Positions 29,601-36,113 of a DNA stretch of 64,000 bases are shown one piece after another. Source of the stretch: Corallochytrium limacisporum Hawaii. Taxonomy: Eukaryota; Protista; Pluriformea. Made by a program: the position numbers and the translations under genes. The notes under the pieces were generated by a model that searched no databases, was not told where the DNA came from, and saw nothing but the letters and a program-made list of their open reading frames with translations. Location: the NCBI GenBank assembly GCA_002811645.1, contig PDIP01000026.1:131035-195034 (forward strand). Reading direction: 5' to 3'. Every line of letters begins with the position of its first letter. The stretch's first letter is position 1.

Positions 29601-30788
29601 ATGGCACCCATGTCACGGGGAGCAGGGCCGTTTGCGGGCACAGGCACTCTGCTGCCACCGTTCCGCTATGCAATTGTAGAAGAAGGCTTGCATCGGGGAG
29701 CGTGTCCAAGTACCAGGAACTTTAATTTTTTAAAGTGCCTCAAGCTTAAGACTATGATTAGCTTGGTTCCACAAAAGATGACTTTGCATTTGCAGCCTTT
29801 CTGTGTTGACGAGGGAATCGAGTTACTGCATTTGGAGACTGCACAATTCAAGGAGGAAGTTCCTCTCAAGGTTGACAATATTGCGGTTGTGCTTTCAAAA
29901 GTCATTGATGTTAAAAATCATCCAATCTACATGCACTGCGTGGACGGTACTCATGTTGTAGGTCTGCTGGGCGTAATGATCCGGCTTCTGCAACGCTGGA
30001 CTCTTTCAGCTGCCATCAATGAATACACCCGCTTCTTGCGTGAGGCCGTTGTATCGACTGAGGAGGAGAAGTTTCTTAAATCCGGGTGGAAGAAGGAGAT
30101 TATTGTACCATTGGATGTACCATTTTGGCTACGCAAGCATTTCTTTGCGGAAAAGGATGGAGGCATGGTTCTTGTACGACATCCTCACTTCAAACTTAAA
30201 GCCTCTGATGAGGTGGCTGATGCTACGATGGTTCAGCAGATCACTCAGCAGGTACAATCGAGCGTTCAAGGCACACCCAAGAAAGGTGTCAGTCCCAATA
30301 TGTACAACTCGACACAAACTCCGGTGAAAGACACAGAGCAGGTTGGTGCGTCTGGTGCAAATGACGTGCGCAAGGTGTCGTACATCGCCTCAGGCAGGGC
30401 CTCGCCGGATCGCTTTCCGTCTCCCGGTCCCCGTGGTGCTGAGGAGTCCGAACTTGACGCCAAACCCTTCTATCCAGGTATGATTGAGAGCATCCAGCGC
30501 TGGAAACAAGGCGGTGGTGTGCAGAGCCCGGAAGGTGGGTTGGCCCGGCGAAAGCAGGCCTTACGAAACCTGCGAGCTGCAGGCAAGCTCGAGAAGGCTG
30601 ATCTCAGCCTCGAGGTCCGAGCGTTGAGCCTAACGGGCCTAGGGCGCAAGAATACAAAGGGCATCCCAGCGCTGCCATACGAGCGATTGAAAGACCCGCA
30701 GATCGTGCCAAACAAGGCGGCTTCCCCAGAGCTCCACACCCCGTCGAGCTCGGGGGTGGGTGGGGAGGCACCGTCCGGCGCGAAATAA
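29601..30788 (+). CDS. Siw14/OCA-family atypical dual-specificity phosphatase, OCA6-like, probably catalytically inactive
   Basis: PPFRYAIVEEGLHRGACP...NFNFL...LKLKTMISL is the family N-terminus. The P-loop HCVDGTHV lacks the CX5R arginine. First ATG is at 29601. Confidence 0.8.
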   Translation: MAPMSRGAGPFAGTGTLLPPFRYAIVEEGLHRGACPSTRNFNFLKCLKLKTMISLVPQKMTLHLQPFCVDEGIELLHLETAQFKEEVPLKVDNIAVVLSKVIDVKNHPIYMHCVDGTHVVGLLGVMIRLLQRWTLSAAINEYTRFLREAVVSTEEEKFLKSGWKKEIIVPLDVPFWLRKHFFAEKDGGMVLVRHPHFKLKASDEVADATMVQQITQQVQSSVQGTPKKGVSPNMYNSTQTPVKDTEQVGASGANDVRKVSYIASGRASPDRFPSPGPRGAEESELDAKPFYPGMIESIQRWKQGGGVQSPEGGLARRKQALRNLRAAGKLEKADLSLEVRALSLTGLGRKNTKGIPALPYERLKDPQIVPNKAASPELHTPSSSGVGGEAPSGAK

Positions 30789-30947
30789 AAACTGCCACCG
30801 CTCTGCGAGAGAAATACGGACACTGGATTACTTTGGTTCTTCCGGATCTACTGGTATGTCAAAGTATGCTTGCGCATGTACGTGAAATGTAAAGAAAAGG
30901 AGTCCGAATTATGACTAAAGAATACAGAAACAGTTATACGATTATTA

Positions 30948-31535
30948 ATGACAACCATGGACCCGGTGTATAAGAATATGGAAGCGGTCGAAGAGCCATC
31001 CACAGGAGAGCGAATCGTCTTATGGCACGAGGACGCGGATGGCACTCCACATCTTGAGGAATTCGAAACATTTCAAGAGTGGGTAAACAGCATCAACTGG
31101 CTTGGTGAACCCGTATTAATTGGAGTTATCACGTTTCATCTTGTGATTATGGTGATGGTGCTGCTCATGCCTAAAGCCAAGAATCTTTCTAGAGAAGCCA
31201 CCTTTTTCGTGAGTCTTATCGTTCTCGCGTTTGTATCGGAACGGGCGAACGAGGAGTGCATCAAGTATTGGCCCATGCTATTCAAGAAGAACCACTGCGA
31301 TAAGGCCGGGATCTTTATGTCGCTGGTGTGGACCTTCCCACTGTGCGTGAACGCCCTACTGATGATCTTGGGCTGGATGGTTGCCTCCTTCAATGATGCC
31401 GCGAACCTTAAGGCAAAGCAGCTCCGGGCGCAGCATGCGCAGCGGCTGAAAGAGATCAGAGAAGGTAGCAAGGCACCGACAAAGCCAGCACCAAAGGCGA
31501 AATCTGCCAAGGCTAAGTCGAAGAAGCGCGACTGA
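30948..31535 (+). CDS. TMEM18: Transmembrane protein 18-like
   Basis: INWLGEPVLIGVITFH and SERANE...YW...F...DKAGIFMSLVWTFPL motifs, three TM helices, basic C-terminal tail. Confidence 0.8.
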   Translation: MTTMDPVYKNMEAVEEPSTGERIVLWHEDADGTPHLEEFETFQEWVNSINWLGEPVLIGVITFHLVIMVMVLLMPKAKNLSREATFFVSLIVLAFVSERANEECIKYWPMLFKKNHCDKAGIFMSLVWTFPLCVNALLMILGWMVASFNDAANLKAKQLRAQHAQRLKEIREGSKAPTKPAPKAKSAKAKSKKRD

Positions 31536-32048
31536 CCCGGATACTCAAGGGCCGAGATCATCTAAGGGACTCTGATCTGAACACCAACCTAATCACAAAC
31601 TAATATAGAAGTACAAAACACCATTCCCCTTCCTTGATTTCTTTTCTCTTTTATTCCTTTTCCTTTTCTTTGGGGTGGGGTGAAGTAGCGTGTCGAAAAA
31701 GGCTACGGAAGTCAAAGATCTGACACTCGGTGGATTAGGCCGCCCCAGAGAGCTGATGAACGGTTTTGTGCTGTGCAAGAATACTGTACTCCTGCAGGAC
31801 ATGTCCTTGATCTGTCCGTCATTTTGAGACATCGGTCATCGAGATCACAGTCGGTACTTTTCGATGCGGTCGTGCACAAGGTGATAGATTACAAAGCCAG
31901 AGGCACGACGTATGTTCTTGGCTATTTACAAGACCTGATCGCCAGCGACGTCAAAATTGAAGCTCCCGGCACTAAACCTTTTCTGCATTTCATCGAGCCC
32001 ATAGTTTAAGCTTCGCCTTAAGAGGCTCATTTCCAAACACTACTTGGT

Positions 32049-32765
32049 TCACTCGCCGAGCAGAGATGTGTTGCCTGACTCGACCTTTTCCAAGAGGGCC
32101 TGGTCGGCCAGCAGGATGAAACCAAAGCCACACTTGGCAATGATGTCAAGGACCATGTAGGCAACGACCTCAACATCGACGGATACGACATTGGCACCTT
32201 CTGCAGCGGCCCAAACTATGGGATACGCGATCCACAGGACAACGGTCATGTTAGCCAAGGTGGCGAACTTGCTCTTAACATCCTCACCAAAGCGCTCGGC
32301 ATTCTTTGCGATACCGGTGTAGAGGGACATAATGATGAAGCCGAAGAAAATGCAGCCGTACACAAAGAATATCCACTTCAGGCCGTTGTCGTACAGGCCA
32401 CCAAGGACACCAGCCACAACCATCATAATGTCAGCACCGATCAGGAAGATTAGCTCGTTTTGATGGGCGCCTGCCAGCAGACCGAGGTCCAGCAGCAACA
32501 ATGGTGTTGTCACGAGCCAGTCTAGGTAACGGGCAAACAGGAAGTGGCGGTCACCAACATGAGTTCCACCGAAGCCGAAGGCCATGGTCATATACGCTAC
32601 GGAAGCGAAGCCGGTGATGAGGAAAGTCAGGTTGTGGAAGCGGCGGTACTCAACATCAACACGTAGACCACCGAAGTAGAAGGCGAAGGTGGACACTAGC
32701 ATGCAGGCAAAGCCAATGTACAGGAACATGAATCCTGTGGAAGAGATCTCTCCGTGCTCAGACAT
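32049..32765 (-). CDS. Type-1 (microbial) rhodopsin, bacteriorhodopsin-like DTD proton pump, 238 aa
   Basis: Seven hydrophobic segments. Helix C ARYLDWLVTTPLLLLD supplies R82/D85/T89/D96 equivalents, helix G LDIIAK supplies D212/K216, and AEG...VDVE matches E194/E204. Confidence 0.96.
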   Translation of the reverse strand: MSEHGEISSTGFMFLYIGFACMLVSTFAFYFGGLRVDVEYRRFHNLTFLITGFASVAYMTMAFGFGGTHVGDRHFLFARYLDWLVTTPLLLLDLGLLAGAHQNELIFLIGADIMMVVAGVLGGLYDNGLKWIFFVYGCIFFGFIIMSLYTGIAKNAERFGEDVKSKFATLANMTVVLWIAYPIVWAAAEGANVVSVDVEVVAYMVLDIIAKCGFGFILLADQALLEKVESGNTSLLGE

Positions 32766-34793
32766 GATTGCTGTTCTTGTACGCTCCGTCTACTACTGCG
32801 AACCAATGATACACAACCTTTACAACTTTGCATACATCTACCGATTCCATTTTGAACAGCATTATACCGTTTACCTCATGTACCTCATCGTGTGCACACA
32901 CCTACACAGCTCCTCAATACGCATCACCGAACGGATGACAGATGATTACGCAGCCCCGTCACATCTGGGTCCACCAGCAGCTATCAACACAGGCCGGTTC
33001 CCCTACAGGCCACGCAGGGCAGCAGAACCGATTGCGCGGGCCGCTCATCACAGGTCCGAAGTTTGCAGCACGGTACCGGTACTGACATTCCGTCACCCTA
33101 ACAAGCCTCTGTGACACACATACGTGTACCCTCCCTGCGCAGAACTTACCGGACATGTACTGCTCTTGCTGTATTGTTACCCGCAGCATTCCGACCCAAC
33201 CCAAGAATCCACATCGGGGGGAGGGGGGGCAAGCCATACTGCATTGACTCAACGCATGGCTGGATTTTCTTTACCACCGTTCTGCTGCCTTCTGCACCCC
33301 AGAGTGAGTATCACTTGTGGCCGGTGCGGGACGTCAACGAATTACGAACGTCGGTGTCGTTAATTCTTCTCGGCACGCTCATTATGTTCACTCAGCAGCC
33401 ATCCCTACGGGCTCACACTTCGTCACTATTCACAAGCGGCGGTACTTTACTGTTGGGCAATCCTAGTAGGCTGTGAACGCATGTATTGTCTGCAGCTCAC
33501 AATGTCTCAGATGTTTCGAGCAAAGAAGTGAGATAATGATCTTCAGATTTCAAATTTGCCAGCGGAGGAATTATTGCAGGACGCGACGAGTGGCGTGCCG
33601 ACTTACACAATTTAGCCAATCCTCCTTACCGCACTACATTGGGTTCTCACAGCGCGCGGTGCAAATTGTTGTTGTTGTTCTTCATCGCCAACCCCCCGGC
33701 GGTGGGATAGTTGGTTTTTCTATTTTGAAGTCGATTGCGGTGGGCATATAAGAACAACATCACCCACCCAAGCGTCTTCTTAAATTTAAGGCCGATGATG
33801 ACTCATGCATCCGCTTACCATTTCCGAACCGCCGCTCCCAGCGTACGCCCGCCCGCGGGCGCAGAGCCCCCCAGGGGGGGTGGGGGCCGGCATTGTTCAA
33901 CACGTATCGCCCGAGGGAAACACCGACAATACAGCATTCGAGCAGTGGGACTGGGGCATGGTAAGGTAAGTGATTGATCTACCAAACGTTTAATGTTCGG
34001 GATTGGGTGAGGACACAACCTGTGTTTGCTGTCAGAGGGTCTCCAGAGTGTTCGCTTATTAAGTCTTCCTCATGACAGATGGGGACCCACTGCACAGCGA
34101 CTGTGACTCATGTAGCACACGTACCCAAGACCTGCCAGGACAGTACAAGACGCGTGGTGTTCCTATACGATTGCTTCATGCAGGTCACCTGCTCAGTGTA
34201 CGCAACCCTTGGTGGTGCGGCTCGTTCAATAAAAGGGCCGCCGATCTGAATCCTGCTCTCCCACACCATTACATCAACGGCTCTCTGATCTGATGCACCT
34301 TGCGCACTCTCAGAGCGCAACAGTGCTGTCTCATTCCGCCCACCGCCTGCTCCTGGACTTCAACCGTGTCTCCCTACCGAACCACCGGTCCATCATTGGT
34401 AACGAACACCTAATAGACATCATTATTTTTTGAAGTTTGGTTGCTCTCGTAAATCTTTTTGGGATTTCATCACCGGCAAGAGTGCGCGTCAGGACGGGGG
34501 AAACTCTGTCCAAACTATTCCCTCTGTCGGTCGCGCTGTGGGCACACTGACTGCGGGGTAAGAGGGGGGGGGAGGTGAGTTTCTGGGCGCGAATAGTTTG
34601 CGTAGGCTTGAGGTGGTCGGGTGTGACGCTTGTCCTTAGCATCAATTGTCGGGCTATTTAACAATCCTTGATTGACCTTACCCATATGTTTCATACTTTT
34701 TTGATTGATTTATTTAAAATATTGTATTTTTGACAGGCAAACATGTAAGAAAATATTTCTTGTTTTTGAAATAGAGACAAAAGCACATGGACC

Positions 34794-36113
34794 ATGAATA
34801 GGGTGGTCATTGAGCGGACTCGCGGGGCACAGGCCGCCAGACCGCGTCGATCAGGCCCACTGACGCGGAATTCAGAATTGGAAAAGGAGCTCAAGATCAG
34901 TAAGGAAAAGGCAAAGCAATTGATTGATAAAGTTCAGAAGTATGAAGGACAAATAGCTGATCTGATGGCACGGAATAGGCAACTCGAGCAGCAAGTGCTC
35001 AAGCAGGATCGGAGCTACCACATGCACAACAATGAAGCAGAACGCGCAAAACGTGATCCTCTCCTCGAAATGGGCCAGACTCGGCAGGTCCGCGACTCAG
35101 AATTTCAACAGGAACCGACGGAATTCCACAAGGAAATTGAACGACGAGAGCGACTTCATGAAACACAACTTAGCAACCTTCAGAAGGAGATGGAACTCCG
35201 TGAAATCAACCGTGCCCAAAAGGAGTCTACAATTGGTGAATTGCAGGAACGAGTAGGTGATCTACAAACACGCATTCGACGCCTGGAAACGGAGCTGTCT
35301 TCAACTCAGAATGAGCGTGATCGGATACGTTCTGACCTCATCAAAGAACGGAAGACTGTAAATGTTGTTGATAAGCGCCAGTACGACGACGTTTTGGTGA
35401 AGTATGAGCGGACTGTCGAGGGACTCCGGCTTCTGCGACAAAAATACAACCATCTCAAGCGTCGCTACGGAAATCAGTGTGCTCGAAGCTCAAAGTTGGC
35501 AGAATCTTTGGGCGAGCATGCCAAGTATGTGGTACAGATGGAAGCCAAGGTAAAGGTGTATCAGAGCAAGGCAGCAGACTTTGTGGACATGAGCTGCCAG
35601 GATGCACTACAGGTCCTGGGGAACATTGACAATGCCCAAGCCCAGAGTGAAGCTCGACAGCGACTGCGCTGTCTGTTGGAGATGTTCCAGGCCCAATTGC
35701 GCAGCCAGAAGATTGCTCTAGAGGACACCATGCTTCAGTCGACCAAGGCACATCAAGACATGGCCCGGCTGGCCGGGTACGTCGCGAGTTTGGAGCGCAT
35801 TCGGGCTGAGGAACTGACGATGTGGGCCCGGATGACGACGGCTGTATCATCACCAGTGCAGCAGTCGTTACAAAAGCCAGCTCTGGGCAGCAATGTAAAG
35901 TCCAAGCAATCGAATTCGTGTTTGAATCAGACAAGCCTTGCGACAAAGGAAGGCATCCCGCATCAGCCTTCGAGAATACCTTTGGCCACCAAGTCCGTGA
36001 TCGCCAACGTCCACGGCTTCCAGAAATCGACTCAAACAAGCCACTATATAGGCGGTGGTGGTCAGGTGCGGAAGTCAGTTTCGTTTTCGAATGTAACCAT
36101 GGTACCTTCTTGA
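34794..36113 (+). CDS. Uncharacterised coiled-coil protein, 439 aa
   Basis: Long ATG-initiated ORF with heptad-rich E/Q/R/L composition and a disordered S/T/K-rich tail. An E2F-like GGCGCGAA lies upstream at 34586-34593. Confidence 0.75.
   Translation: MNRVVIERTRGAQAARPRRSGPLTRNSELEKELKISKEKAKQLIDKVQKYEGQIADLMARNRQLEQQVLKQDRSYHMHNNEAERAKRDPLLEMGQTRQVRDSEFQQEPTEFHKEIERRERLHETQLSNLQKEMELREINRAQKESTIGELQERVGDLQTRIRRLETELSSTQNERDRIRSDLIKERKTVNVVDKRQYDDVLVKYERTVEGLRLLRQKYNHLKRRYGNQCARSSKLAESLGEHAKYVVQMEAKVKVYQSKAADFVDMSCQDALQVLGNIDNAQAQSEARQRLRCLLEMFQAQLRSQKIALEDTMLQSTKAHQDMARLAGYVASLERIRAEELTMWARMTTAVSSPVQQSLQKPALGSNVKSKQSNSCLNQTSLATKEGIPHQPSRIPLATKSVIANVHGFQKSTQTSHYIGGGGQVRKSVSFSNVTMVPS

Follow-up and report, generated by a model that had tools for sequence, protein, structure and literature searches.

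A putative bacteriorhodopsin-type proton pump and a candidate retinal pathway in the holozoan Corallochytrium limacisporum

We analysed a stretch of 64,000 nucleotides (hereafter the window) from contig PDIP01000026.1 of the Corallochytrium limacisporum Hawaii assembly (GCA_002811645.1; positions 131,035 to 195,034 of the forward strand); positions on this contig are counted below from the first letter of the window. On its minus strand, at 32049..32765, the window carries the gene of a type-1 (microbial) rhodopsin, whose product is probably a light-driven pump of the bacteriorhodopsin (BR) type that binds retinal and moves protons outward. A preliminary description, made from the letters of the window alone, had supposed an animal-related heterotroph as the host, and C. 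limacisporum, a corallochytrean holozoan, fits that picture, being a specialised osmotroph (PMC13345962). Genome searches were carried out on the 24.1-Mb C. limacisporum assembly of 286 contigs, in which the contig bearing the opsin is 195 kb long or more.

Sequence, predicted structure and paralogues of the opsin

The opsin coding sequence is a single exon, an open reading frame (ORF) running from ATG to stop and specifying 238 amino acids, with seven predicted helices and a short beta-hairpin between helices B and C. The open frame around it amounts to 246 codons in total, thus leaving no room at either end for a fused domain. The sole Pfam family recognised in the protein was PF01036 (Bac_rhodopsin), with an E-value of 4.5e-53 and a score of 180 bits (cut-off 24.6), and the match extended over positions 6-219 of the 224 in the profile. 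Among solved structures the best sequence match was archaerhodopsin-2 (E 6.5e-46), followed by archaerhodopsins 1 and 3 and by BR at about 1e-40, the identity of the opsin to the archaerhodopsins and BR being 37-43%. The full-length profile match, the seven-helix model described below and the lysine residue in helix G identify the protein as a type-1 rhodopsin.

Residues were numbered according to BR from the printed alignment, in which residues 12-231 of the query correspond to residues 10-236 of the BR chain. The helix C motif RYLDWLVTTPLLLLD (32487..32531, minus strand), assigned both by direct reading and from the alignment with archaerhodopsin-2, contains R79 (BR R82), D82 (D85), T86 (T89) and D93 (D96) and hence the DTD motif; by equivalence with BR, D82 would act as the proton acceptor and D93 as the proton donor. 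In one alignment (A1) the columns of R79, D82, W83, T86, T87, P88 and D93 are invariant. The segment that leads from the last part of helix F through the F-G loop into helix G (32169..32201, minus strand) provides E189 (BR E194; codon 32199-32201) and E199 (BR E204; codon 32169-32171), the equivalents of the proton-release pair, with E199 invariant in A1. The helix G motif DIIAK (32133..32147, minus strand) contributes D207 (BR D212, the second counter-ion) and K211 (BR K216, the Schiff-base lysine; codon 32133-32135); D207, A210 and K211 are invariant in A1, and K211 is at least 90% conserved in a second alignment (A2). Further positions matching BR are T47 (T46), Y58 (Y57), W83 (W86), D112 (D115), W178 (W182), Y181 (Y185), P182 (P186) and W185 (W189). 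Four aromatic residues of the retinal pocket, W83, W178, Y181 and W185, are thus retained, while BR W138 is replaced by F134. The preliminary description had reported an intact seven-helix opsin of 238 amino acids with the DIIAK lysine, the DTD motif, the equivalent of R82, both release glutamates and no fusion, and every detail of it that could be checked was accurate.

The AlphaFold2 model, for which an alignment of 61 sequences was used, returned a mean pLDDT of 96.5 and a pTM of 0.91 and shows seven helices together with a BR-like B-C hairpin. A Foldseek search related the model to deltarhodopsin, cyanorhodopsin, archaerhodopsins, BR, CsR and LR with TM values of 0.86-0.91 and root-mean-square deviations (rmsd) of 1.1-1.8 Å (4.3 Å in the case of LR). 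The ranking by Z was obtained from a separate structural alignment of the model against a representative library. Here the highest values belonged to CsR from Coccomyxa (6gyh), deposited as a proton pump (Z 33.5, rmsd 1.1 Å, 34% identity), to the Rubrobacter rhodopsin, deposited as a thermophilic rhodopsin (Z 33.2, rmsd 1.2 Å, 41% identity), and to LR/Mac from Leptosphaeria maculans (7bmh), again deposited as a proton pump (Z 33.0, rmsd 1.0 Å, 37% identity). Acetabularia AR2 (3am6), a further deposited proton pump, scored Z 30.6 with an rmsd of 1.8 Å and 32% identity, and the enzyme rhodopsin Rh-PDE (7d7q) Z 22.8 with an rmsd of 3.2 Å and 17% identity. The full set of pump residues and the model's Z of 33 to CsR, LR/Mac and the Rubrobacter rhodopsin argue for the stand-alone, outward-pumping protein of BR type that had been proposed for this gene.

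The protein search of the assembly returned two further full-length, stand-alone DTD rhodopsins, both on contig C77, of 242 amino acids (minus strand) and 261 amino acids (plus strand) and 62-63% identical to the copy in the window. Their genes (C77:155999-156703, minus strand, and C77:161523-162212, plus strand) are oriented head-to-head with about 4.8 kb between them, and a P-type-ATPase-like gene and a DEAD-box helicase flank the pair. The two proteins correspond with 100% identity to the EukProt models Clim_evm45s77 and Clim_evm46s77. All three paralogues retain the DTD motif, the Schiff-base lysine, the R82/D212 counter-ions and the E194/E204 pair. Comparison between paralogues gave dN/dS ratios of 0.17-0.23 with dS values of at least 0.98, indicating that all the opsin copies are old and under purifying selection. 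A C-terminal tail of the form EKVE-x-G-x-x-SLL is also common to the three proteins.

Chromophore supply, light sensing and proposed function

No gene for retinal synthesis occurs within the 64-kb window, as had been remarked in the preliminary description, and the genome search suggested there located a Blh enzyme and a carotenoid pathway on other contigs. Contig C64 encodes a Brp/Blh-type beta-carotene 15,15'-dioxygenase of 400 amino acids (PF15461, 146 bits; TIGR03753, 147 bits, cut-off 95), which is 100% identical to EukProt Clim_evm8s64. The only relatives found for this protein were of bacterial type, with identities not exceeding 31%, too low to point to a source. The RPE65-type carotenoid oxygenase family (PF03055) gave no match in the whole assembly, so that the production of retinal must rely on Blh.

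Genes for the preceding steps are clustered on contig C230 (approximately 21.2-29.4 kb), where a CrtB-like phytoene synthase of 474 amino acids is accompanied by two divergently placed desaturases of the CrtI family (607 and 530 amino acids), the shorter of which, at 692 bits, exceeds the 640-bit cut-off of the bacterial equivalog NF058655. A two-domain lycopene cyclase of the CarR type is encoded on contig C175, unlinked to this cluster. Except for an unrelated TRM13 methyltransferase, no Pfam family was recognised in the ORFs adjacent to the cyclase or in those separating the crt genes. The assembly contains two other SQS_PSY matches: squalene synthase accounts for one (TIGR01559, 468 bits), while the second matches HpnD only, with a weak score, and most likely represents another member of the family. 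The route from geranylgeranyl diphosphate to retinal appears complete at the gene level: the phytoene synthase and the CrtI-type desaturases of C230, followed by the CarR-type cyclase of C175, would lead to beta-carotene, which would be converted to retinal by the Blh of C64. The occurrence of prokaryote-type carotenoid and Blh enzymes in a holozoan may reflect old lateral acquisitions.

A more distant, fourth rhodopsin match was found on contig C57 and belongs to a rhodopsin-guanylyl cyclase fusion (approximately 25.4-27.0 kb, plus strand; PF01036, E 1e-20, and PF00211, E 3e-50). The EukProt model Clim_evm8s57 is 100% identical to this cyclase ORF, over 89% of the longer, TTG-initiated frame. 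In the names of all four EukProt models matched here, the figure following the letter s is the number of the contig. The cyclase domain is closest to the RhGC structures of Blastocladiella and Catenaria (6ao9, E 5e-55; 6sir) and the rhodopsin part to Salpingoeca Rh-PDE (7d7q, E 3e-28), and the full-length relatives of the fusion that carry a taxonomic name are all from chytrid fungi, with 31-41% identity. The cyclase retains the substrate glutamate of ETIGDA and has serine at the cysteine of HWCLVGD. The available survey of fungal rhodopsin-cyclases spanned 44 fungal species only (PMC9616733); a CyclOp-type sensor in a holozoan lies beyond that coverage and bears on whether the system predates the split between fungi and Holozoa.

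For the opsin in the window we infer retinal binding, transport direction, membrane location and physiological role, the first two by homology. Following BR and the eukaryotic relatives, all-trans retinal would be bound to K211 as a protonated Schiff base and isomerised by light, upon which the proton of the Schiff base would pass to D82, with D207, R79 and T86 forming the counter-ion complex. A proton would then leave through E189 and E199 on the extracellular or lumenal side, and D93 would reprotonate the Schiff base before taking up a proton from the cytoplasm. The resulting gradient would be established at the plasma membrane or, should the protein be sorted to an endomembrane, at that membrane, and would add to ATP-driven proton pumping in a walled osmotroph of sunlit reef lagoons. 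With this pump gene, its two further copies and the genes for retinal synthesis, the organism may thus cover part of its energy needs from sunlight.

Several points weigh against this interpretation. The DTD motif by itself does not prove pumping, since the pump-like channelrhodopsins of cryptophytes share it, and the retinal binding and transport direction put forward here are predictions from homology. The retinal pocket differs from that of BR at four positions, namely F134 (W138), G137 (S141), C138 (T142) and F141 (M145); the same four letters are the alignment consensus in the eukaryotic and uncultured relatives of the opsin. The carotenoid enzymes are mostly below the NCBIfam equivalog cut-offs, so that their exact products, beta-carotene in particular, are predictions. 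As for transcription, which is described below, the two public sequencing runs from 2015 on which it is judged (X1 and X2, from separate studies) are only guessed to be RNA, the depth of assembled contigs is a poor guide to expression level, and the first 60-120 nt at the 5' end of the coding sequence fall outside the contig coverage.

The same protein could be conceived as a photosensor that cycles slowly, in the manner of Neurospora NOP-1 or of the haloarchaeal sensory rhodopsins, and that would signal to a transducer and generate no gradient. Fungal members of the superfamily do include slow-cycling, sensor-like opsins, the genome invests in light sensing through the rhodopsin-guanylyl cyclase, and the three paralogues could differ in role. 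However, sensory rhodopsins are typically devoid of the D96 donor and of the E194/E204 pair, all of which are retained in the three paralogues; moreover, the open frame of 246 codons accommodates neither a transducer-like extension nor a fused domain, and the nearest structures were deposited as pumps. The seemingly high transcript depth of the gene would also be more in keeping with a protein that supplies energy in bulk than with a receptor, although this is weak evidence. Taken together, these observations make a sensory function unlikely.

Light-gated ion conduction, as in the pump-like cation channelrhodopsins GtCCR and ChRmine of cryptophytes, is much harder to reconcile with the data. 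These channels have the DTD motif too, and channelrhodopsins are used by several heterotrophic protists (PMC12557545). In the structural ranking, however, the DTD channelrhodopsins GtCCR2 (Z 21.9, rmsd 2.8 Å, 23% identity), GtCCR4 (Z 21.2, rmsd 3.6 Å, 19% identity) and ChRmine (Z 21.1, rmsd 3.0 Å, 22% identity) lie far from the model in both structure and sequence, whereas the pumps reach Z 33 and 34-41% identity, so that a close kinship to the GtCCR/ChRmine group was not borne out. In addition, C. limacisporum is for the most part a walled and non-swimming cell, and the fast currents of phototaxis would have no obvious use in it. The main argument for a pump rather than a channel is this ranking combined with the retained E194/E204 pair, and we regard channel activity as very improbable.

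Relatives, origin and comparison with known systems

A word-indexed search for relatives of the putative pump retrieved haloarchaeal BRs, Dothideomycete opsins, one cyanobacterial protein and one protein from Chaetoceros, all at about 37-43% identity. The exhaustive search, which covered 1.84 billion cluster representatives, gave 1836 relatives, the nearest being from the chromerid Vitrella brassicaformis (50% identity), an uncultured marine sequence (47%) and the haptophyte Pavlovales sp. (45%), with Pelagophyceae and the coral symbiont Durusdinium also represented. Outside the Corallochytrium trio, no protein with more than 50% identity, and hence no close environmental or holozoan orthologue, was present among these representatives.

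Two trees were calculated, a quick one with 147 rows and a careful one with 71 rows under LG+C20+F+G4. In both, the three Corallochytrium proteins formed a single clade (support 100/99) in which the copy in the window is sister to the C77 pair (98/85), and the trio fell outside the haloarchaeal (100/99), the wider prokaryotic (98/96) and the fungal (100/97) clades. It grouped weakly, with branch support of 44-85%, with marine algal sequences from Vitrella, Pavlovales, Pelagophyceae, Chaetoceros and Durusdinium. Forcing the trio next to the fungal clade cost 7.6 lnL units and was not rejected by the approximately unbiased (AU) test (p-AU 0.276). The trees do not support a recent transfer from haloarchaea; the trio may descend from an opisthokont ancestor or may have been transferred between eukaryotes, from a marine alga. 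The lateral acquisition considered possible in the preliminary description keeps that standing: the trio lies outside haloarchaea and fungi, but the test tolerates a sister position to fungi. A viral vector found no support either, as a scan of IMG/VR gave only distant relatives, with identities of at most 32%.

The closest solved counterparts of the opsin differ from it in different respects. The algal BR-like pumps CsR and AR2, both deposited as proton pumps, share its fold and its stand-alone size of about 230-250 amino acids; however, identity is only 32-34%, and the host is a non-photosynthetic holozoan rather than an alga. LR/Mac and the other fungal opsins belong, like the Corallochytrium protein, to opisthokont hosts, and LR has the carboxylate triad of BR. 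They are distinguished by a long N-terminus, which the Corallochytrium opsin lacks, and by the residue at BR E194, which is glutamate in Corallochytrium and aspartate in two Dothideomycete opsins of A1. Fungi make retinal by means of an oxygenase of the RPE65 family, whereas the Corallochytrium genome contains Blh and no RPE65 homologue. The haloarchaeal BR and archaerhodopsins (1ap9, 3wqj) are the best sequence matches among solved structures, have identical pump residues and share with Corallochytrium a Brp/Blh enzyme, but the Corallochytrium protein shows the replacements W138F, S141G and M145F in the pocket of the ionone ring and a shorter B-C loop. Finally, the choanoflagellate Rh-PDE, which is no pump, has an additional helix and is fused to an enzyme, in contrast to the Corallochytrium opsin with no fused domain.

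Proton-pumping rhodopsins are already known in fungi, algae and dinoflagellates, and the Corallochytrium genes were already present as nameless models in the public proteome. What is new is the lineage and the context, the mechanism being ordinary for the class. A 2023 review named Rh-PDE as the holozoan microbial rhodopsin and regarded the family as lost in animals (PMC10770216), and a 2025 paper listed channelrhodopsins, choanoflagellate Rh-PDE and the pumps of Oxyrrhis as the rhodopsins of heterotrophic protists (PMC12557545). Our literature search, which left subscription journals outside its reach so that an earlier mention is possible, found no paper tying Corallochytrium to type-1 rhodopsin, carotenoids, pigmentation or retinal.

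A broader proposal, which we put forward tentatively and hold to be somewhat short of an even chance, is that C. limacisporum is a self-sufficient retinal photoheterotroph, the first in Holozoa. Its three BR-type pumps, served by its own Blh-type pathway, would confer a light-dependent gain in energy or survival, and the chytrid-type rhodopsin-guanylyl cyclase would add light sensing through cGMP. If this were true, the opisthokont stem or the early holozoans would have possessed both energy-type and sensor-type microbial rhodopsins, which animals later lost. A culturable holozoan with three pump-type rhodopsins, a retinal pathway and a rhodopsin-cyclase makes light harvesting by non-photosynthetic relatives of animals testable, as well as the question of which light systems the opisthokont ancestor had. 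Transfection of C. limacisporum has been reported. The proteins themselves would be compact eukaryotic proton pumps, the kind used as optogenetic silencers.

Genomic setting, transcription and strain variation

The opsin gene is surrounded by ordinary eukaryotic genes, including TMEM18 (PF14770, 30948-31535, plus strand), an Oca-like Y_phosphatase2 gene, a proteasome subunit, Vps62 and a G-alpha gene (PF00503, 36161-37237, minus strand). Its GC content of 0.53 lies inside the range of its neighbours (0.47-0.55), and its GC content at third codon positions (0.67) is slightly higher than theirs (0.49-0.65).

It might be objected that the gene is a contaminant or a recent foreign insertion, from a haloarchaeon, a bacterium or a giant virus, and stands outside the organism's own biology, since the commonest top sequence matches are haloarchaeal BRs at about 40% identity and Blh is an enzyme of prokaryotic type, closest to bacterial proteins. 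This reading is largely refuted and, as contamination, untenable: the opsin is embedded in its long contig between TMEM18 and G-alpha with a GC content like that of its neighbours, it was found in two runs from two separate studies, one of them on a strain about 1% diverged, the three paralogues are spread over two contigs, the trio falls outside the haloarchaeal and prokaryotic clades, and viral contigs hold only the remote relatives mentioned above. The opsin is integrated in the genome, as the preliminary description had argued from its eukaryotic neighbours, and its host-like composition and its presence in the two runs concur.

Assembled contigs of the two runs were placed on the region 30000-35500. 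The opsin was covered by an X1 contig at 31693-32646, without any difference from the window, and by an X2 contig at 31626-32705. The remaining pieces were also gene-sized and corresponded to the phosphatase (up to about 30930), to TMEM18 (from 30913 or 31019 to 31630) and to a coiled-coil gene (from about 34720), while contig coverage of 32760-34600 was zero in both runs. Word depth was highest for the opsin contigs (770-800), compared with 20-185 for the neighbours. We read both runs as transcriptomes, because contigs from the DNA of a 24-Mb genome would extend through the 1.9 kb of intergenic sequence as well, given that the genes around it are covered 20- to 800-fold. The placed contigs show no joints, so the covered part of the opsin is free of introns. 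On the question of expression raised in the preliminary description, the gene-bounded contigs of the two runs suggest that the opsin gene is probably transcribed.

The contigs of both runs continue co-linearly from the coding sequence for about 360-420 nt beyond the stop codon, and the stretch 31626..32048 (minus strand) thus looks like the 3' untranslated region (UTR) of the opsin rather than the relic of another gene. The TMEM18 contigs stop at 31629 or 31630, so that the opsin and TMEM18 transcripts meet tail-to-tail near 31626-31630. Upstream of the opsin, an intergenic region of about 2 kb (32766..34720) presumably holds the promoter; it contained no convincing ORF and no tRNA, Rfam yielded nothing at E <= 0.1, and the repeat scan returned only short repeats at chance level.

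Across the covered parts of 30000-35500, X1 was identical to the window, whereas X2 differed by about 1%, with 23 substitutions and 3 single-base insertions or deletions (indels), which points to two strains of the organism in the public data. Within the opsin coding sequence X2 differs at four sites, three of them synonymous and the fourth a D72G replacement in the B-C loop; the UTR, which is shorter than the coding sequence, carries six substitutions and two indels.

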